Source: Mytilus edulis (lineage: Eukaryota). From it: 64,000 nucleotides of DNA. The notes beneath the pieces are model-generated. The model did no database searches, was not told where the DNA came from, and saw only the letters and a list, made by a program, of their open reading frames with translations. A program made the translations under genes and the position numbers. This document shows, piece after piece, positions 1,930-41,000 of this stretch; the stretch's first letter is position 1, and each line of letters starts with the position of its first letter. The stretch lies in contig NC_092353.1 in NCBI RefSeq assembly GCF_963676685.1, forward strand, positions 53,692,001 to 53,756,000, written 5' to 3'.

Positions 1930-3197
1930 CAAGTGAGCTTTTCCAACCACTTTGCGTCCGTCGTCCGTCGTCCGTCGTCGTTAACTTTTACAAAAATATT
2001 CTCCTCTGAAACTACTGGGCCAAATTAAACCAAACTTGCAATTGACCACAATCATCATTGGGGTATCTAGTTTAAAAAAATGTGTCCGGTGACCCTGCCA
2101 ACCAACCAAGATGGCCGCCATGGCTAAAAAAGAACATAGGGGTAAAATGTACATTTTGGCTCATAACTCTAAAACCAAAGCATTTAGAGCAAATCTGACA
2201 TGAAGTAAAATTGTTTATCAGGTCACGATCTATCTGCCCTGAAATTTTCAGACAAATCGGACAACCCGTTGTTGAATTGCTGCCCCTGAATAAGTAATTT
2301 TAAGGAAATTTTGAAGTTTTTGCTTATTATCTTGAATATTTTTAGATAGAGATAAACTGTTAACAGCAATAATGTTCACCAAAGTAAGATCTACAAATAA
2401 GTCGACATGACCAAAATTGTCAGTTGACCCATTAAGGAGTTATTGCCCTTTATAGTCAATTTGTAACCATTTTTTAAAAAATTTAGTATTCTTTTAGAAA
2501 ATCCTCTTCTCTGAAACTACTGAGCCAAATTTAACCAAACTTGGCCACAATCATCATTTGGGTATCTTGTCTTAAAAATGTGTGGCGTGACCCTGCCAAC
2601 CAACCAAGATGGCCGCTATGGCTAAAAATAGTACATAGGGGCGAAATGTAGATTTTGGCTTATATCTCTGAAACCAGCGCATTTAGAGGAAATCTGACAG
2701 GGGATATATTGTTTATCAGGTCAAGATCTATCTCCCCTGAAATTTTCAGACAAAACAGACAACCTGTTGTTGGGTTGCTGCCCCAGAATTAGTTATTCTA
2801 AGGAAATTTTGTAATTTTTGGTTATTATCTTGAATATTATAATAGATAAAGATAAACTGTAAACAGCAATAATGTTCAGCAAAGTAAGATCTACACATAA
2901 GTCAGCATGACCAAAATTGTCAGTTGACCCATTATGGAGTTATTGTCCTTTATAGTCATTTTTTAACAATTTTCATAATTTTTTGTAAATTTTTGTAAAT
3001 TTTTAGAATATATTTTCCACTGTATTTACTGGGCCAAGTTCATTATAGATAGATATAATTGTAGCAAAAAGCATGTCCAGTAAAGTAAGATCTACAAACA
3101 CATCATGATCACCAAATCACAATTTTGTCATGAATTTATCTGTGTCCATTGTTTAATATGCACATAGACCAAGGTGAGCGACACAGGCTCTTGAGAG
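1930..3197 (+). mobile_element. Non-autonomous Helentron-associated (HINE/DINE-like) element with two internal ~500 bp core repeats
   Basis: caagtgagc head, (cgtc/cgt)n microsatellite, core starting tcttctctgaaactact repeated at ~2000 and ~2505, aaggtgagcgacacaggctcttgagag tail. Same family at 28688 and 31151. Confidence 0.7.
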
Positions 3198-3582
3198 TGT
3201 TACTAACTGGATGTTTCTGTTTTGGCCCCATCATAGATTCGAGTTTATTTGTATTGAACCAGAATCCTGAAGACAGCTTATCGAGAATCTAGAGACAAAT
3301 ATTAGAGAAAATATTAACTACTTACGATTCATTATAATTTATAGGTACACGTTTAGGTGAACTACGTTGGTATAAATAAACAACGAAATAACATTTTCAA
3401 CAAGGTTTATATTTGTAAGAATTAAACTAAAATTTGAAGAAAACGCGAAATAGAATTGAGATGTGGGATATATGGTAATGAGACAAGAACCCAACGTCGA
3501 CAAGATACACTATAAATACACCACCAGACATTGAACATGAATAAAACAAAATGGTGGGTCTATGTAAGTGAGACAACAATCC

Positions 3583-34915: not shown

Positions 34916-36534
34916 TATCATTGGACCCTATAGTGAATAAACATCATAAAAGCGCACATTTATTTCGTTGAACATTTACTCTAAAGATATTGAACTTATA
35001 TACGGACAAGTGGTATAAAATGAAAATAATACTTTATTAATTTCGTGCGTATTTTTTTTTCAAAAATACATTCCAATGGCAATTTCATATAACAAACTAT
35101 ATATGTAACTGCCACGATTATATACAAATACTCTGTAAATTGTTGAAATATGATTTAATTTTTTTTTGCATTTATTTGATTTTTAATTTCAAATCCTTAG
35201 ACTTAAATTTAACTCTATATGCTTAAATTAGGTTTGTTACATTTTTTTCTATTGAAAACTTGATGTATTTACCTAAAGAAAATAGTTAGGTTATGATATT
35301 TGTTGTCTTATCACATTTACTTTTTTCATTTACAACGCAGCAAGTGACACTACTTAAGCAGGACCTCCTCTGTGTTTGTTACTGCCGCATTAAAATAAAT
35401 ATCTCCTTCGGGTACAGGCAAGTGCAAACAAACGAAAAAAACAATTTCTTCGCCAGAACATATATTGACGAAATCTTTGTCTTCTTTTGTTTTTCTGTTT
35501 TTTTCTTTTTATAAACCGCAGCATTTCTTCATTATGCAACTTCTTTGCTACTCTTGTTTGCTTTAAAATGAATAAAAACTGGAAGAACACAAGTATTAAA
35601 ATTTGAACTTGACATTCAACAGAAACAATAACTTCGTCCATTCTTTTTCAAGTATGAGTATCGGTGTATTAACACATACATTTTATCAATTATTTTCTAT
35701 TTATACACAGTGTTTACAGTTTTACGGTTAATTAGGTCAGATCGATTACGTTTTTTTTTTGTAGTGTGAACGCAGTGGTTCAGATTATACCGAGAGAGAT
35801 CGTTGGGAGTAAAGATAATGTGAACGCTAACTGGTTCTATTTAGATAGATTCAAATTAGAACAAAAAAAAAATGCTAGTGTTGATGAAGAATCATACAAG
35901 CATCTCCTGCATATAGAAGTTATATGTCCTAGTTGATACAATATTCCAGAGACATTATTTCCTATCTTGATTACCTTGATAAATGGATATTACTTTCAAT
36001 GTTGTACTGTACTTAAACAAGGATTGTGAGTGGTGAAGTTAAAGTCATCTTTCGAAAAATTTGCAGACGCCTGCATGAAGTGGTTGATTGTTATGAAACA
36101 TATGTTTCACAGACGACGAATATGATCCAATTTTCGTTTTCCTTTCTTCGAATGTGACATTACATAATTAGACTTATCACCAACTGTGTTTTGACACGAA
36201 CAGCATGACGTATAGATCAGGATATGCTTACCCTTCAGGACTTAGAATGTTTTTTCTGCGGTTCATGTTGCTCTGTCATAAGATTTCATCTTCATGTTAT
36301 TGTTTTTGTTAATACTGTTATTTAGTTTATTGATATTATGTCATCTAACGACCAAACGCCAAACAACGCCGTGGTGTAGTGGTTAATGCATCGGACTACT
36401 AACACAAAGGTTCCTAGTTCGATTCCCGTTGGGATGAAAATTTCAGGGACTGAATTTTCGGCGCTCCCTTGACACCAATTGCGACTATGGTCTTGAGGAA
36501 ACGATGATAGTCCGTCGGAAGGAGACGATAAATG

Positions 36535-38088
36535 AGAAAAAGTCGAATGCACCTTACAAGAGAATAGACGTGTAATTTTCTGCTCCTGTTTTTGGGTTAC
36601 TATTTCTAGTGGATTTGGATTTAACCAGCCGGAATAAGTAAATGTGACTATCTAACAGTAATGTAAGTTGAAATACTGACATTTTTGAGAATTATACTGT
36701 GCGTATTTGTTGTTTTGTGAACTTTACTTTTTGCTGTGAAACGTTGAGGTTCTTTAAAGGGAAACAATAATGGAAAAATTACAAAAGCCTTTGGTTGCGT
36801 TAATTAACAGTGTCATAGATGATTGTGAACAATTTACATGGAATTCCAATTACCTTGGTGACAAAATGAGAATTTCATTTGTTCGGACAAGGGGTGATGC
36901 AATACATGTCAATAGAGGAATAAAGCATAAGTCCAGATCGAATAGAGACAGAGACAATAAAAGGATGAAAACATTGAAAGAAAGAATGAACAATACAGAA
37001 GACGACGTTAATAAGACACTTAACATTAATATTGAAAATTCGGAAATGGAAATGGAATCGGGTGATGATATGCTAAACGATGGAACGATAGATCTCCCAT
37101 TAGTAGCCCCCGAAAAGATAAACATTACACCTGTAGTGAAAGTTGTTCAGCGGGTTTGTGTATCGCTGGACAAAACAATCAATTTAAAGGACAATGAAAT
37201 AACGGAAAGTATAGTGTGTCAAGGGTCGCGAACTCAACGGAATTTACACACGGATGTTAAGGATAAAGAAAATAGACAAATAGACAAAATAAAAACTATC
37301 GCTACGAAATAAAAAATTACAGGGAAGAGTCCGTGTACAGATAGTCATTTTCAGAAAGTTGTGTACAGCCAACGATCAGAAGGAAGTTGTGTTATAGGGA
37401 AATTAAAAAAGAGAGACACGGTAGTTATATGTACTATAGGGAAACGTGGTGAAGCGCGTCATGTAAATTTAGAGACTGATAAAACGGAATATGAAACCGC
37501 AATGTCTTACGTCTACAGATTTAGAGACATTAGAAAATCGGACGATGATGAATTAAAGTGTCATGTTCGTGGTATTCCAAGGATTGAAAGATACACAGAG
37601 ATACATAAACTTTGTTTGTGGTGTTTTGATGAATAAACTGTTTTAAGGAGGGGGACAATACATGTTGAATACTTGTAATAATTTTAAAATAATTTGTGTG
37701 ATGTATCATAATTCTGGTCTGGAAACCAACCGTTTTTTTTTTTTATTAAACAACCAACATTAATTAAAATAGATCATTTGAGTATTTAAACATTTCGCAT
37801 TTTTTTCTCTCCTTGTAATAGTTGAACTGTTGTTTTTATTATTTTATTTAAAACTAGTAAAAAGTAAAAAAAAAGAAGGAATACAAGATTAAAGTATTAG
37901 CAAGTTAATTTTTAGAGAGTCATTTAAGGATGAAATAAAATAAGGAAATATATAGATTTTACATGTAAAATTAGAATATTTTCCATTTCAGAGAAAGGAC
38001 AATAATAATCTACATTGTTTTCATTTATGTGTAATGCAAACTGTGATATGTATATATGAATTGTGAATATAATAAAGATAAAAAAAAA
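36535..38088 (+). mobile_element. 1554 bp polyadenylated insertion, probable non-autonomous non-LTR retroelement with ORF1-like coding region
   Basis: Ends in AATAAAgat(A)9 and is flanked by identical 147 bp direct repeats (36388-36534, 38089-38235). Confidence 0.75.
36770..37636 (+). pseudogene. ~288-codon ORF of unknown function broken by one in-frame TAA (37310-37312)
   Basis: The 180 aa and 91 aa ORFs are in the same frame with no other stop between them; basic KHKSRSNRDRDNKR patch; no EN or RT motifs. Confidence 0.6.
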
Positions 38089-41000
38089 GCATCGGACTAC
38101 TAACACAAAGGTTCCTAGTTCGATTCCCGTTGGGATGAAAATTTCAGGGACTGAATTTTCGGCGCTCCCTTGACACCAATTGCGACTATGGTCTTGAGGA
38201 AACGATGATAGTCCGTCGGAAGGAGACGATAAATGGCTGACCCGTGTTAAGAGAGAGCTATATCTCTTGCACGTTAAAGACACCCTTGTAGATTTCGAAA
38301 AAGAGCAGGCTAATGCCGCTACAAGGCAGCACTCGCCCCCGCAAAGTTGAAAGGGATTAATATAAGTTGTAAAACTTGTTTCCCAATCCACTATCAATAA
38401 ATATGTTTAAACTAACCAACTTAATTATTTTTAACAGAACTTTCATTTTCATGATTGACTGACTCTCATTGTTTCATTCCAAATGAAAGTCAAAATATGA
38501 AGCAGACTTGAATGAATATATTATATTGTATCTGTTATTGTCATCTAAATGGAAGAGATGCCTTCAACATAGTCCCCAAATGGGATAACATGTTTTAGCG
38601 GACACTAAAGTAAGTGAATGATTTTTGCTTCTTTCCATTTTGTTTTTCAGCTTTTGTATTAGGTCCGCCTCATCAGAAAAAATAGTCTCTTGCTCAAACA
38701 AAACGAAAATGAAACAGAAGTTACAAACGATATATCAAATGTCTAACCTAATGATACAACACAACGAACTTCGTCGTACTTTGCATACAGAGTCTTTTAG
38801 TAAAATATCAATATTATGATACAATAAAACAGCGTAAGAGTAAATCCAATGTTCAAAATACACGATTATAGCCAGATGACTTTTGTGAATAAGGCTGTAT
38901 GATATTTGTTTTTCCTTTTTAAAAATTTAATCAACACCCAAAGTGCAGGCCTCATCAGTTTCCTGATATATTAGAATGTAAATGTACTAATAGGATACAC
39001 TTTCACCAAAAGATAGCAAAGCGAGAACAAAATTCATAATGCACATAAAAAACAAAAGTTTTTTCAAGGTCAAACTTTCCTGAGTTTTGTAACCCGAATT
39101 AGCACACACTCTAATAGTACTTATACATGTATGATGTACAGAGTGAAACAAAATGTAATCTCAATAACGAACAAAAAATTAAATCTTCAGATATATTTTT
39201 TGAATAAATGTTTATACGAAAAGGAATAAATCATAGGATGGATTGATGAAAAAGGGGACAAACGATAATAAACAGAAACCAGGTTAGTCAGCTATTTGAT
39301 ACAGATAATTCATGTGTGACTTGATGAATATTTACAACATTATTCTATATATTTATGGAATTATCTCCCCTGGCTTACAAACATTAAATCATGTGACCAT
39401 TTACCTTCCTTTTCCACAGAAATGTTCTATTGATAAGACTAAATTAGGTATGTCATTTTATCATTTTATTTCTGTATATTACAGTCACATTTTACACAGA
39501 CATCCACACAACCACACATACTATAACTATGTAGTAGGAATTTTCTTCAACTGTTTTATTTTATGTTGATCAACTTTCGTTTCAGTTGTTTTATGAGATA
39601 TGTTAGAACACTTTGAATGTCGTACTAATTATGCCTATTTCAACTATGTTTTTATTGTGTGCCTTGAGTTATGTGGAGTTTTGTCTTTACTGTTTCCGCG
39701 TAATGCGTTGTTGGGGACATAGACATATTAGGCGTCCTTAAATACCGTCTTTCCGTCCGCATGTCTGTCCGTTCGGTCTTGTTTAATAGCGCGCTCTTAC
39801 TAATATCCACAATTCTTGCCATTTTTTTAAAACTTATAACATAGGTTTACATCAAAAACGTATTCGACTATATAGTTCGATAAGCAGTTCTGATCATGTA
39901 TTTATAAAACAGATAGAACGTATATAAGCCATTTAGAATCATTAATTGGAACATCGCATTGTCAGCGCAATCATTTGTACAATTTGTAACAGAATTTTAT
40001 AAAACTTATACGATAGGTTGTATTATTAAAATCTAATACGAGTGCGAGAAGCAATGACAATCAATATTTTTTAATACACGTGTTACGAAAATGTATATGC
40101 TCGACGCTGAGGTTGACAAATTAGACTTTAAATGCCGGTATCGGATCAAAGCAAACAAGTTATTTAAAGATTTTAATTACCTGTGCACCAATTGAATCAT
40201 TGTGTAAAACTGCACAGTAATGATGTCCGCTTATATTTTCTTCAATAACAAACGTCTTTTTAAAAACTTTATCACAGTTAATTTCCTTTTGAATATTCCT
40301 TAAGGAACAAATGTGATACAATGATTCTTTTGTGAAGAATACAATTGATATACCCCGCTTAACTTTTGAAAAAAAGGAGGAAAGGGGGAGGATATATATT
40401 TTTTCATTAACCTAGGAACAGTGTATCCAATTTCACTTTATATGGAATACATTTCCTTGGATTGTGTCTTTTGCGGACTAGTATATACTACTCTGTGTGA
40501 TACCTACTAAGAAAAAGATTGATTTATTTTATATTATTTTCATGTAAAATGTGACCGGTTTGACCCAACAACACCTTATATATATACCTGCAAAGTTTCG
40601 AAATATTCCGCTTTGTAGTTTCTGAGGTACGAGTTATAACCCATGGGAAAAAAATTATAACGGAAAATTGCACTACATTTTCTTTGAAGCATTCAACTAT
40701 TTAAGGGGATACATAACACCTAAGATAAGATAACTCTTACTCATATTCCGATTCTTTGCTACGTTTTAAAATCATGTGCAATATGCAAGCTTTTAAAAGA
40801 TCATGATCAGAATGTTTACATTATTGCTAAGAGCAGCTGTACACCATTTGTTATTCATTTAATCTTTTAATCCATTTAAATTTACTCATTTTCAATAAAT
40901 GAATTTTCAAAGAGACATAAAAGGGAAATTTCAGAGTGAAACAAATTACCAAATGAAAACTAGGACGTTGGAAAAAGGGGGAATTGCACCAGGATATTTT

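Follow-up and report, generated by a model that had tools for sequence, protein, structure and literature searches.

A probable non-autonomous retroposon family that inserts within tRNA genes of Mytilus edulis, and a 147 bp target-site duplication in a tRNA-derived SINE

Introduction

The mammalian HAL1 is a poly-A element without long terminal repeats (non-LTR) that keeps only an ORF1-like open reading frame (ORF) and lacks pol. In the rotifer element R9, where a long target-site duplication (TSD) is the rule, and in rare L1 events, target-primed reverse transcription (TPRT) with a distant second break duplicates 100 bp or more. Drosophila HeT-A resembles HAL1 in having no pol, and its targeting is done by its Gag protein (PMC5537684, PMC2173066). 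Non-LTR elements of multicopy RNA genes include Keno (U2) and Mutsu (5S) of the Tx1 clade, and tRNA genes are targets of NeSL-1_TV (tRNA-Pro), LIN15_SM (tRNA-Arg) and LIN25_SM (tRNA-Glu) of the NeSL clade (PMC4640811, PMC3706591). A precedent for targeting through ORF1 is Dictyostelium TRE5-A, whose ORF1 protein binds TFIIIB (PMC5911963). Dada DNA transposons carry a DDE transposase and terminal inverted repeats (TIRs) and produce TSDs of 6-7 bp (PMC3706591, PMC8869645). Here we describe an insert of 1554 bp in a short interspersed element (SINE) with a tRNA-derived head. It lies in a stretch of 64,000 nt from the mussel Mytilus edulis (assembly GCF_963676685.1, contig NC_092353.1, positions 53,692,001 to 53,756,000), hereafter called the window, whose first nucleotide is position 1. 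The insert is very probably a young full-length copy of a Mytilus-specific, non-autonomous poly-A retroposon family that inserts into tRNA genes by TPRT, and this copy carries one nonsense mutation. A limited full-text literature search, in which Repbase was not covered, gave no report of tRNA-targeting retroposons in bivalves.

Results

A preliminary description of the window, made by reading alone, had reported a perfect 147 bp repeat around an insert ending in AATAAA-GAT-A9, the restoration of one intact SINE on removal of the insert with one repeat, and a poly-A junction between the A and B boxes. All three points were reproduced. Direct reading gave the exact repeat (Table 1) and placed GAT at 38077-38079 and the A-run at 38080-38088, and a repeat search extended the duplication to 150 nt at 99% identity (36385-36534 versus 38086-38235), the sole mismatch lying within the 3 nt before the exact stretch (AAT versus AAA). 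The flanking pieces correspond to SINE positions 1-167 (36368-36534) and 21-348 (38089-38416), and both match many genomic copies with 94-96% identity. These matches fall in the same genomic copies with start coordinates exactly 20 nt apart (for example C14:30103922/30103942, C9:12278698/12278718 and C3:70761964/70761984), so that a normal SINE of 348 bp is restored once the insert and one repeat are taken out. The poly-A joins the SINE after GGTTAAT between the two boxes, and both boxes are also intact in the piece upstream of the insert. ARAGORN did not call the SINE head as a tRNA, though both boxes are present, and an Rfam search of 36200-38500 gave no match.

The SINE family comprises at least 2,500-3,200 candidate copies in the genome, each at most 96% identical to the window copy. 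A second, independent SINE on the other side of the insert, which the preliminary description had named as an objection, can be discarded: two such SINEs would differ at about 6 of the 147 positions, and none differs. The window SINE itself is unremarkable, a diverged copy (~95%) of a SINE that is very abundant; at 36386, 36416, 38224, 38259 and further positions it differs from nearly all family reads in three species-level samples.

A DNA search of the 1.37 Gb genome revealed at least 45 matches to the insert, among them full-length relatives with 95, 94, 90, 89, 75 and 68% identity that start and end at the same nucleotides. Identical sharp ends were found in full-length relatives at 20 or more other places (68-95% identity). 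Nearly all other full-length copies lie inside tRNA genes in sense orientation, with about 20 nt of the tRNA 5′ part upstream of the element, the poly-A joined to the tRNA from about position 21, and a short direct repeat. From every tail in the fetched loci, 23 distinct 3′ flanks were collected, 13 of which are plain tRNA from position 21 or 22. They represent Ile-AAT (two array variants), Thr-AGT, Phe-GAA, Gln-CTG, Gly-TCC, Met-CAT, Trp-CCA, Asn-GTT, Val-AAC, Val-TAC and two unassigned types. The remaining flanks are two or three tRNA-like sequences, the window SINE and seven stretches of other DNA. The tRNA and tRNA-like flank types number sixteen, all in sense, and at least ten tRNA isoacceptor types are hit.

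Empty sites were rebuilt by removing the element together with one TSD copy and were then submitted to ARAGORN, which recognised intact tRNA-Ile, Gln, Val, Asn, Phe, Thr and Trp. In all of these sites, counted in rebuilt coordinates, the first anticodon base is 74 and the cut comes after 60, which without exception puts the nick 13 nt before the anticodon and directly 5′ of A21. With the nick marked by a slash, the contexts read ...GGTT/AGAGC..., ...GGTT/ATCAC..., ...CGGT/AGCGC... and ...TGGG/AGAGC.... Two off-target sites, AAATT/AAGCAAGG and AAATT/AATAAGCAGG, point to a local TT/A preference that is far too loose alone to account for the tRNA specificity. Poly-A is joined to tRNA-Ile at 22 junctions, and since all 20 of those on C5 adjoin a family tail, no other type of poly-A element uses the tRNA-Ile site there.

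SINE heads are hit as well. In a pattern search, poly-A joined to SINE position 19 or 21 was found at five more genomic places, and two of these junctions (C1:36044125 and C5:43949654) directly follow family-tail matches, so that SINE heads represent a recurrent minor target. The other three lie at C6:69154215, C12:1725699 and C12:5319906. The joint is An/GTGCATCGG, the canonical TT/A nick, at three of the five places, and An/GGGCATCGG and An/GCGCATCGG at the other two.

Very large tandem arrays of tRNA genes were observed at C5:87515000-87524999 (L061), C11:11048000-11057999 (L063) and C8:68394000-68403999 (L060). The tRNA-Ile(AAT) array repeats every ~350 bp, spans at least C5:87.37-87.57 Mb and holds about 21 family insertions; some of them were copied along with the array units, as identical insertions recur. 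Genes for tRNA-Gln(CTG) and tRNA-Gln(TTG) alternate on opposite strands with a period of ~880 bp, and a cluster of tRNA-Val genes is also present. Two copies have unusual 5′ flanks. A full-length copy in tRNA-Phe (L008, C10:68206694) has 30 or more T directly upstream in place of the tRNA 5′ half, with no TSD found, and a copy in an intron-containing tRNA-Met (L029) has no recognisable 5′ copy of the target. Target deletions or rearrangements are possible causes.

TSDs were tabulated for all events with both junctions available, about 17 in number. Fourteen have 10-18 bp (10, 11, 13, 14, 14, 14-16, 14-18, 15, 15, 15, 16, 16, 16 and 17), two of them at non-tRNA sites. The other three measure 50 bp (L002, tRNA-Ile), 147 bp (the window, SINE) and 343 bp (L020, tRNA-Thr), and the 5′ joints carry 0-5 extra nucleotides. 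An offset of 10-18 bp is also found outside tRNA genes, which suggests that it is set by the integration machinery and not by the tRNA gene. The preliminary description had proposed a non-LTR family that targets SINEs or tRNA genes, and the poly-A, TPRT-type family at a fixed position in tRNA genes and SINE heads agrees with this. Collecting further copies and tabulating their sites and repeat lengths, as it had called for, bore the proposal out in part: the sites are mostly one tRNA coordinate, and the duplications are mostly short.

A further part of that proposal, in which the second nick is set one nucleosome (147 bp) or one RNA polymerase III (Pol III) factor footprint from the first, did not hold up. 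The length of exactly 147 bp is what it would predict. However, the commonest TSD length is 10-18 bp, in tRNA genes as well as elsewhere, and the other long duplications of 50 and 343 bp have no length in common with it. Moreover, the window 5′ joint (SINE ...ACGATAAATG at position 167, then the element start) has no second match in the genome, though at least five other copies sit in heads of the same SINE. A ruler of this kind is thus highly improbable; the 147 bp offset looks like a one-off outlier and its agreement with the nucleosome length like a coincidence. Integration in this family is otherwise regular, and a TSD of 147 bp is one of its rare results.

The 343 bp duplication of L020 is exact and runs from A21 through the tRNA end and its T-run terminator into ~270 bp of unique DNA, leaving a complete tRNA-Thr gene upstream of the element. 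As it passes the terminator into unique DNA, it must be a duplication at the DNA level and not a product of RNA template switching. This also bears on a chimeric retrocopy as the source of the window structure, in which reverse transcriptase (RT) would have switched from SINE RNA to a poly-A mRNA and back, giving SINE(1-167)-mRNA-SINE(21-348). The parts do stand in the order expected from two template switches, and the duplicated stretch lies wholly within the transcribed SINE. Against this, the element is found at an identical tRNA coordinate in 15 or more genuine tRNA genes, where its TSDs are short and its flanks genomic, the untranscribed DNA beyond the Pol III terminator in L020 indicates that long duplications are made on DNA, and a switch point would need to coincide with the canonical insertion site. 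We consider such a chimera very unlikely. Events with a long TSD that rebuild the gene or the SINE promoter may be preferentially kept, at three of about 17 events in a small sample.

The family can be estimated at about 200-300 copies. The tail 18-mer TAATAAAGATAAAAAAAA has 212 exact matches in the genome, compared to 12 for a reversed control (places were taken from the first 100 of the 212, with C7-C14 outside these), and ORF searches gave 130 A-type and 186 B-type candidates. A-type elements measure ~1.55 kb and B-type elements ~1.75 kb, members spanning 1.55-1.77 kb. Only three things are common to both types: the target site, the first ~22 nt (AGAAAAAGTCGAGTG(C/G)ACCTT) and the last ~100 nt (TTTCAGAGAAAGGACAATAA...CTGTGATATGTATATA...ATAATAAAGAT-An). 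This 3′ tail is kept across all subfamilies whereas the remainder of the 3′ untranslated region (UTR) diverges, and RNAalifold predicted no conserved pairing in it. Every copy ends in AATAAA-GAT-A(8-20), the signal standing 3 nt before an A-run of variable length, and 5′-truncated copies occur (L028, L034 and L036). Taken together, the mRNA-like layout, AATAAA, variable A-run, sharp termini, fixed nick and orientation, TSDs, filler nucleotides and 5′ truncation form the signature of TPRT. The family was active in recent times, as the two TSD copies show no differences over 2 x 147 bp in the window or 2 x 343 bp in L020. With the nearest sampled relatives of the window copy (L002 and L009) only 95% identical, its source copy lies outside the sample.

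About 32 nt from the element start, all subfamilies have AGACGTG or GGACGTT at the same place, a motif which we take to match the downstream promoter element (DPE) of the internal promoters of insect long interspersed elements (LINEs). By analogy with those LINEs, we regard the conserved 5′ end, in which AGACGTG occupies +32 to +38, as a candidate internal RNA polymerase II core promoter of the initiator/DPE type; transcription is predicted to begin in the A-run at 36535-36541. The start of the 3′ tail (37986-37991 in the window; also in L020/L021) shows a pyrimidine run followed by TTTCAG/R and resembles a 3′ splice acceptor. Two copies, at C1:31309068-31313509 (L011/L018) and C13:26071173-26073032 (L010/L017), are broken by secondary insertions of ~3.1 kb and ~0.3 kb at element position ~905-965. 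At C5:87402747 and 87404513, C7:21413492-21419913 and C4:50777719-50787996, tails or ORFs are only 1.8-2.6 kb apart, which points to insertions placed back to back or to arrays made of an element and a tRNA remnant.

Each element has one ORF of about 290-300 aa. In the window it reads as 180 aa plus 91 aa because of the in-frame TAA (Table 1). It is intact in most other copies, for example at C5:87489027-87489893 with 289 aa, the open frames of most scored copies being 284-345 aa long. A-type and B-type proteins align from end to end with ~24% identity. Between subfamilies the ratio of nonsynonymous to synonymous divergence (dN/dS) is 0.15-0.53 with dS reaching 0.9-1.3, which shows that the protein was needed throughout a long history of purifying selection. 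A processed pseudogene of the usual kind, derived from a host mRNA and placed at random by a generic LINE, would share the mRNA-like layout of UTRs, ORF, AATAAA and poly-A. It would not explain why the copies number in the hundreds, fall into several old subfamilies that keep their termini and intact ORFs, and stand nearly all at one tRNA coordinate, and no intron-bearing parent gene was seen; of all the alternatives weighed here, this is the most remote, with a negligible chance of being correct.

Named homologues were found only in Mytilus galloprovincialis and M. coruscus, where they are entered as "hypothetical protein". When 1.84 billion representatives were searched with a profile, 93 clusters emerged, all of at most 325 aa and none with a fusion to an RT or any other domain. 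Pfam gave no consistent match and no transposase domain, and a PDB profile search gave one weak match to an isomerase (E 0.008) that was judged to be due to chance. An AlphaFold2 model from a 14-sequence alignment has a mean predicted local distance difference test (pLDDT) score of 57. Only residues 190-289 are predicted with confidence, as a domain of four strands and two helices; residues 1-42 are predicted as a helix and beta-hairpin (pLDDT about 65), residues 56-76 as a basic helix (about 50-56), and residues 75-188 as disordered and acidic. Foldseek found no relative of the model (best E 0.44), a VIA-align comparison with 48,161 chains reached at best Z 3.9 for polo-box or Pur-alpha-like sheets, below a meaningful level, and ESM Atlas gave no usable match. 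None of these results identifies the protein as an RT, a nuclease or a known ORF1/Gag.

At C10:9.07 Mb (L064 2543-4192, minus strand) the family ORF is enlarged to about 549-554 aa by an expanded coding microsatellite, which is translated as poly-Met/Thr, poly-Glu and poly-Asp and leaves the N-terminal domain intact. If the TAA was already present in the source RNA, the window copy could, as a speculation, have been mobilised with the protein supplied in trans.

With its size of 1.55 kb, a protein-coding and mRNA-like layout and no tRNA-like head, the insert is not a SINE itself (Pol III head, no ORF, <~600 bp). Nor is it an autonomous LINE, as no RT or endonuclease (EN) was found in any family element, which has a single ORF without Pfam match. 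The search for RT domains (RVT_1) gave 15,622 candidates, of which 150 were scored, and none of these stood beside a tail among the matches listed. Within all 255 kb of fetched loci, the ORFs of at least 200 aa were family ORFs except for one frame of 294 aa at the edge of L007/L041, which has no family resemblance.

Read data were checked in three DNA runs (low-coverage short Logan contigs) and one RNA run, of which ~6% was read. Among the contigs of the DNA runs, no 1701 bp skip marking an empty allele was found.

Several observations speak against the insert being a TPRT-inserted copy of such a family. The window 3′ joint, A9/GCATC, lies 3 nt downstream of the canonical TT/A site. No contig of the three DNA runs bridges either window junction, the contigs breaking in the SINE, and the RNA run gave no reads on the element. 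The full-length EN/RT partner with shared ends that the preliminary description had called for was not found among the tail, 5′-end, ORF and RVT_1 matches. Pfam, PDB, Foldseek, VIA-align and ESM Atlas showed no similarity of the protein to an ORF1/Gag, nuclease or nucleic-acid-binding family, so that a role can be assigned to it by analogy only. Finally, four tails in the tRNA-Ile array on C5, at 87380580, 87402747, 87409110 and 87459699, have no recognised ORF. Alternatively, the window 3′ joint is canonical with a single T>A change, which gives a TSD of 150 bp with one mismatch; at 36386 the window copy has A and the SINE consensus G.

The unbridged junctions would also be expected from an assembly artefact or from a local tandem duplication of a 1701 bp unit, and a highly repeated SINE invites mis-joins. 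Yet both junctions lie exactly at the canonical 5′ and 3′ termini of the element, the 3′ joint is at the family target position, and analogous long TSDs occur at two other loci on other chromosomes. There is accordingly very little probability left for this origin. The window structure rests on the assembly and on its exact agreement with the family termini and target site.

Table 1. Features of the SINE locus and its insert (window positions).
Feature	Positions	Strand	Evidence
First 20 nt of the SINE, including A box 36372-36382	36368-36387	+	Loose read ends at 36368 in three runs; colinear genomic copies
147 bp TSD, 5′ copy (SINE 21-167), including B box 36417-36427	36388-36534	+	Identical to 38089-38235
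Full-length A-type element, 1554 bp: 5′ UTR, ORF, 3′ UTR, AATAAA, A9	36535-38088	+	Relatives with the same ends
Conserved 5′ terminus AGAAAAAGTCGA(A/G)TGCACCTT; AGACGTG (DPE-like) at 36566-36572	36535-36572	+	Terminal ~22 nt kept in A- and B-types
Family ORF, ~289 aa, with one in-frame TAA at 37310-37312	36770-37636	+	95% identity to the intact L002 ORF
Conserved 3′ tail of ~100 nt, TTTCAGAGAAAGGACAATAA...CTGTGATATGTATATA...ATAATAAAGAT-A9; AATAAA at 38071-38076	37986-38088	+	Kept in all subfamilies
147 bp TSD, 3′ copy	38089-38235	+	Identical to 36388-36534
Remainder of the SINE, positions 168-347/348	38236-38415	+	Colinear genomic copies; loose read ends at 38414-38416

Discussion

Judging from the junctions, the family inserts in sense by TPRT, with a first nick in the bottom strand immediately 5′ of A21 (...GGTT/AGAGC...) and a break of the top strand usually 10-18 nt downstream of it. 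In the window, a tRNA-derived SINE head served as the target, and the top strand broke 147 nt downstream and not at about 15, so that 147 bp were duplicated. RT and EN would be supplied in trans by a LINE, probably one with an APE-type endonuclease. The stagger of 10-18 bp and the T/A nick resemble those of the APE-type elements R1, Tx1 and L1, and LINEs of the Tx1 clade are common in bivalves (PMC10294476). The invariant tail may act as the recognition site of the RT. Similar to HeT-A and TRE5-A, the element protein could be of the ORF1/Gag kind and serve as an RNA chaperone or binding protein and/or in the delivery to Pol III genes. Long TSDs might arise if the usual cut of the top strand does not take place and a break farther away serves instead.

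A more far-reaching idea, which we put forward tentatively and hold to be rather doubtful, is that the ~290 aa protein itself is the targeting module. It would recognise the A-box/D-arm or TFIIIC/TFIIIB-bound tRNA genes of any isoacceptor, and the element would hijack the RT and EN of an unrelated LINE. If true, this would amount to intragenic homing to tRNA genes of all kinds by a system of two components, with a protein fold new to mobile elements, in which occasional long TSDs rebuild the tRNA gene and lower the cost of insertion. A compact site-specific targeting protein, should the ORF product prove to be one, would be of interest for targeted integration. The family also offers a tractable case for the question of how a non-autonomous element gains target specificity, what sets the distance of second-strand cleavage in TPRT (10-18 versus 50-343 bp at the same site), and how large tRNA gene arrays tolerate parasitism.

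Comparison with known systems

Similar to Keno, Mutsu and the NeSL and LIN elements, the mussel family uses one precise nucleotide in a multicopy small-RNA gene, in fixed orientation and with precise 3′ and variable 5′ joints. Those elements encode their own EN and RT and are confined to one gene species each. The mussel family, in contrast, encodes neither enzyme and hits the same structural position in at least ten tRNA isoacceptor types as well as in SINE heads.

With HeT-A it shares the poly-A, the retention of only one ORF, here of a putative Gag/ORF1 kind, and the absence of pol, and like HeT-A it is nevertheless site-specific and successful. It differs in that its protein has no detectable similarity to Gag/ORF1 in sequence or fold, and in its target, which lies within tRNA genes and not at chromosome ends.

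TRE5-A and TRE3 as well as the yeast elements Ty1 and Ty3 likewise use Pol III genes as safe havens (PMC5911963). They integrate tens of bp up- or downstream, and the gene is spared. The mussel family, however, inserts within the gene and thereby separates its A and B boxes, except where a long TSD has restored the gene.

The precise insertion within tRNA or snRNA genes of animals with very many such genes is reminiscent of Dada. The insert is not a Dada element, as it has no transposase domain, its ends (AGAAAAAG... and ...poly-A) are not inverted, its TSDs measure 10-18 bp and 5′ truncation occurs. In comparison to R9, long TSDs are the exception (3 of about 17 events) and vary in length. 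The mussel family is thus set apart in three ways: it uses tRNA genes in general at one internal coordinate, it also hits SINE heads, and it encodes only an orphan protein.

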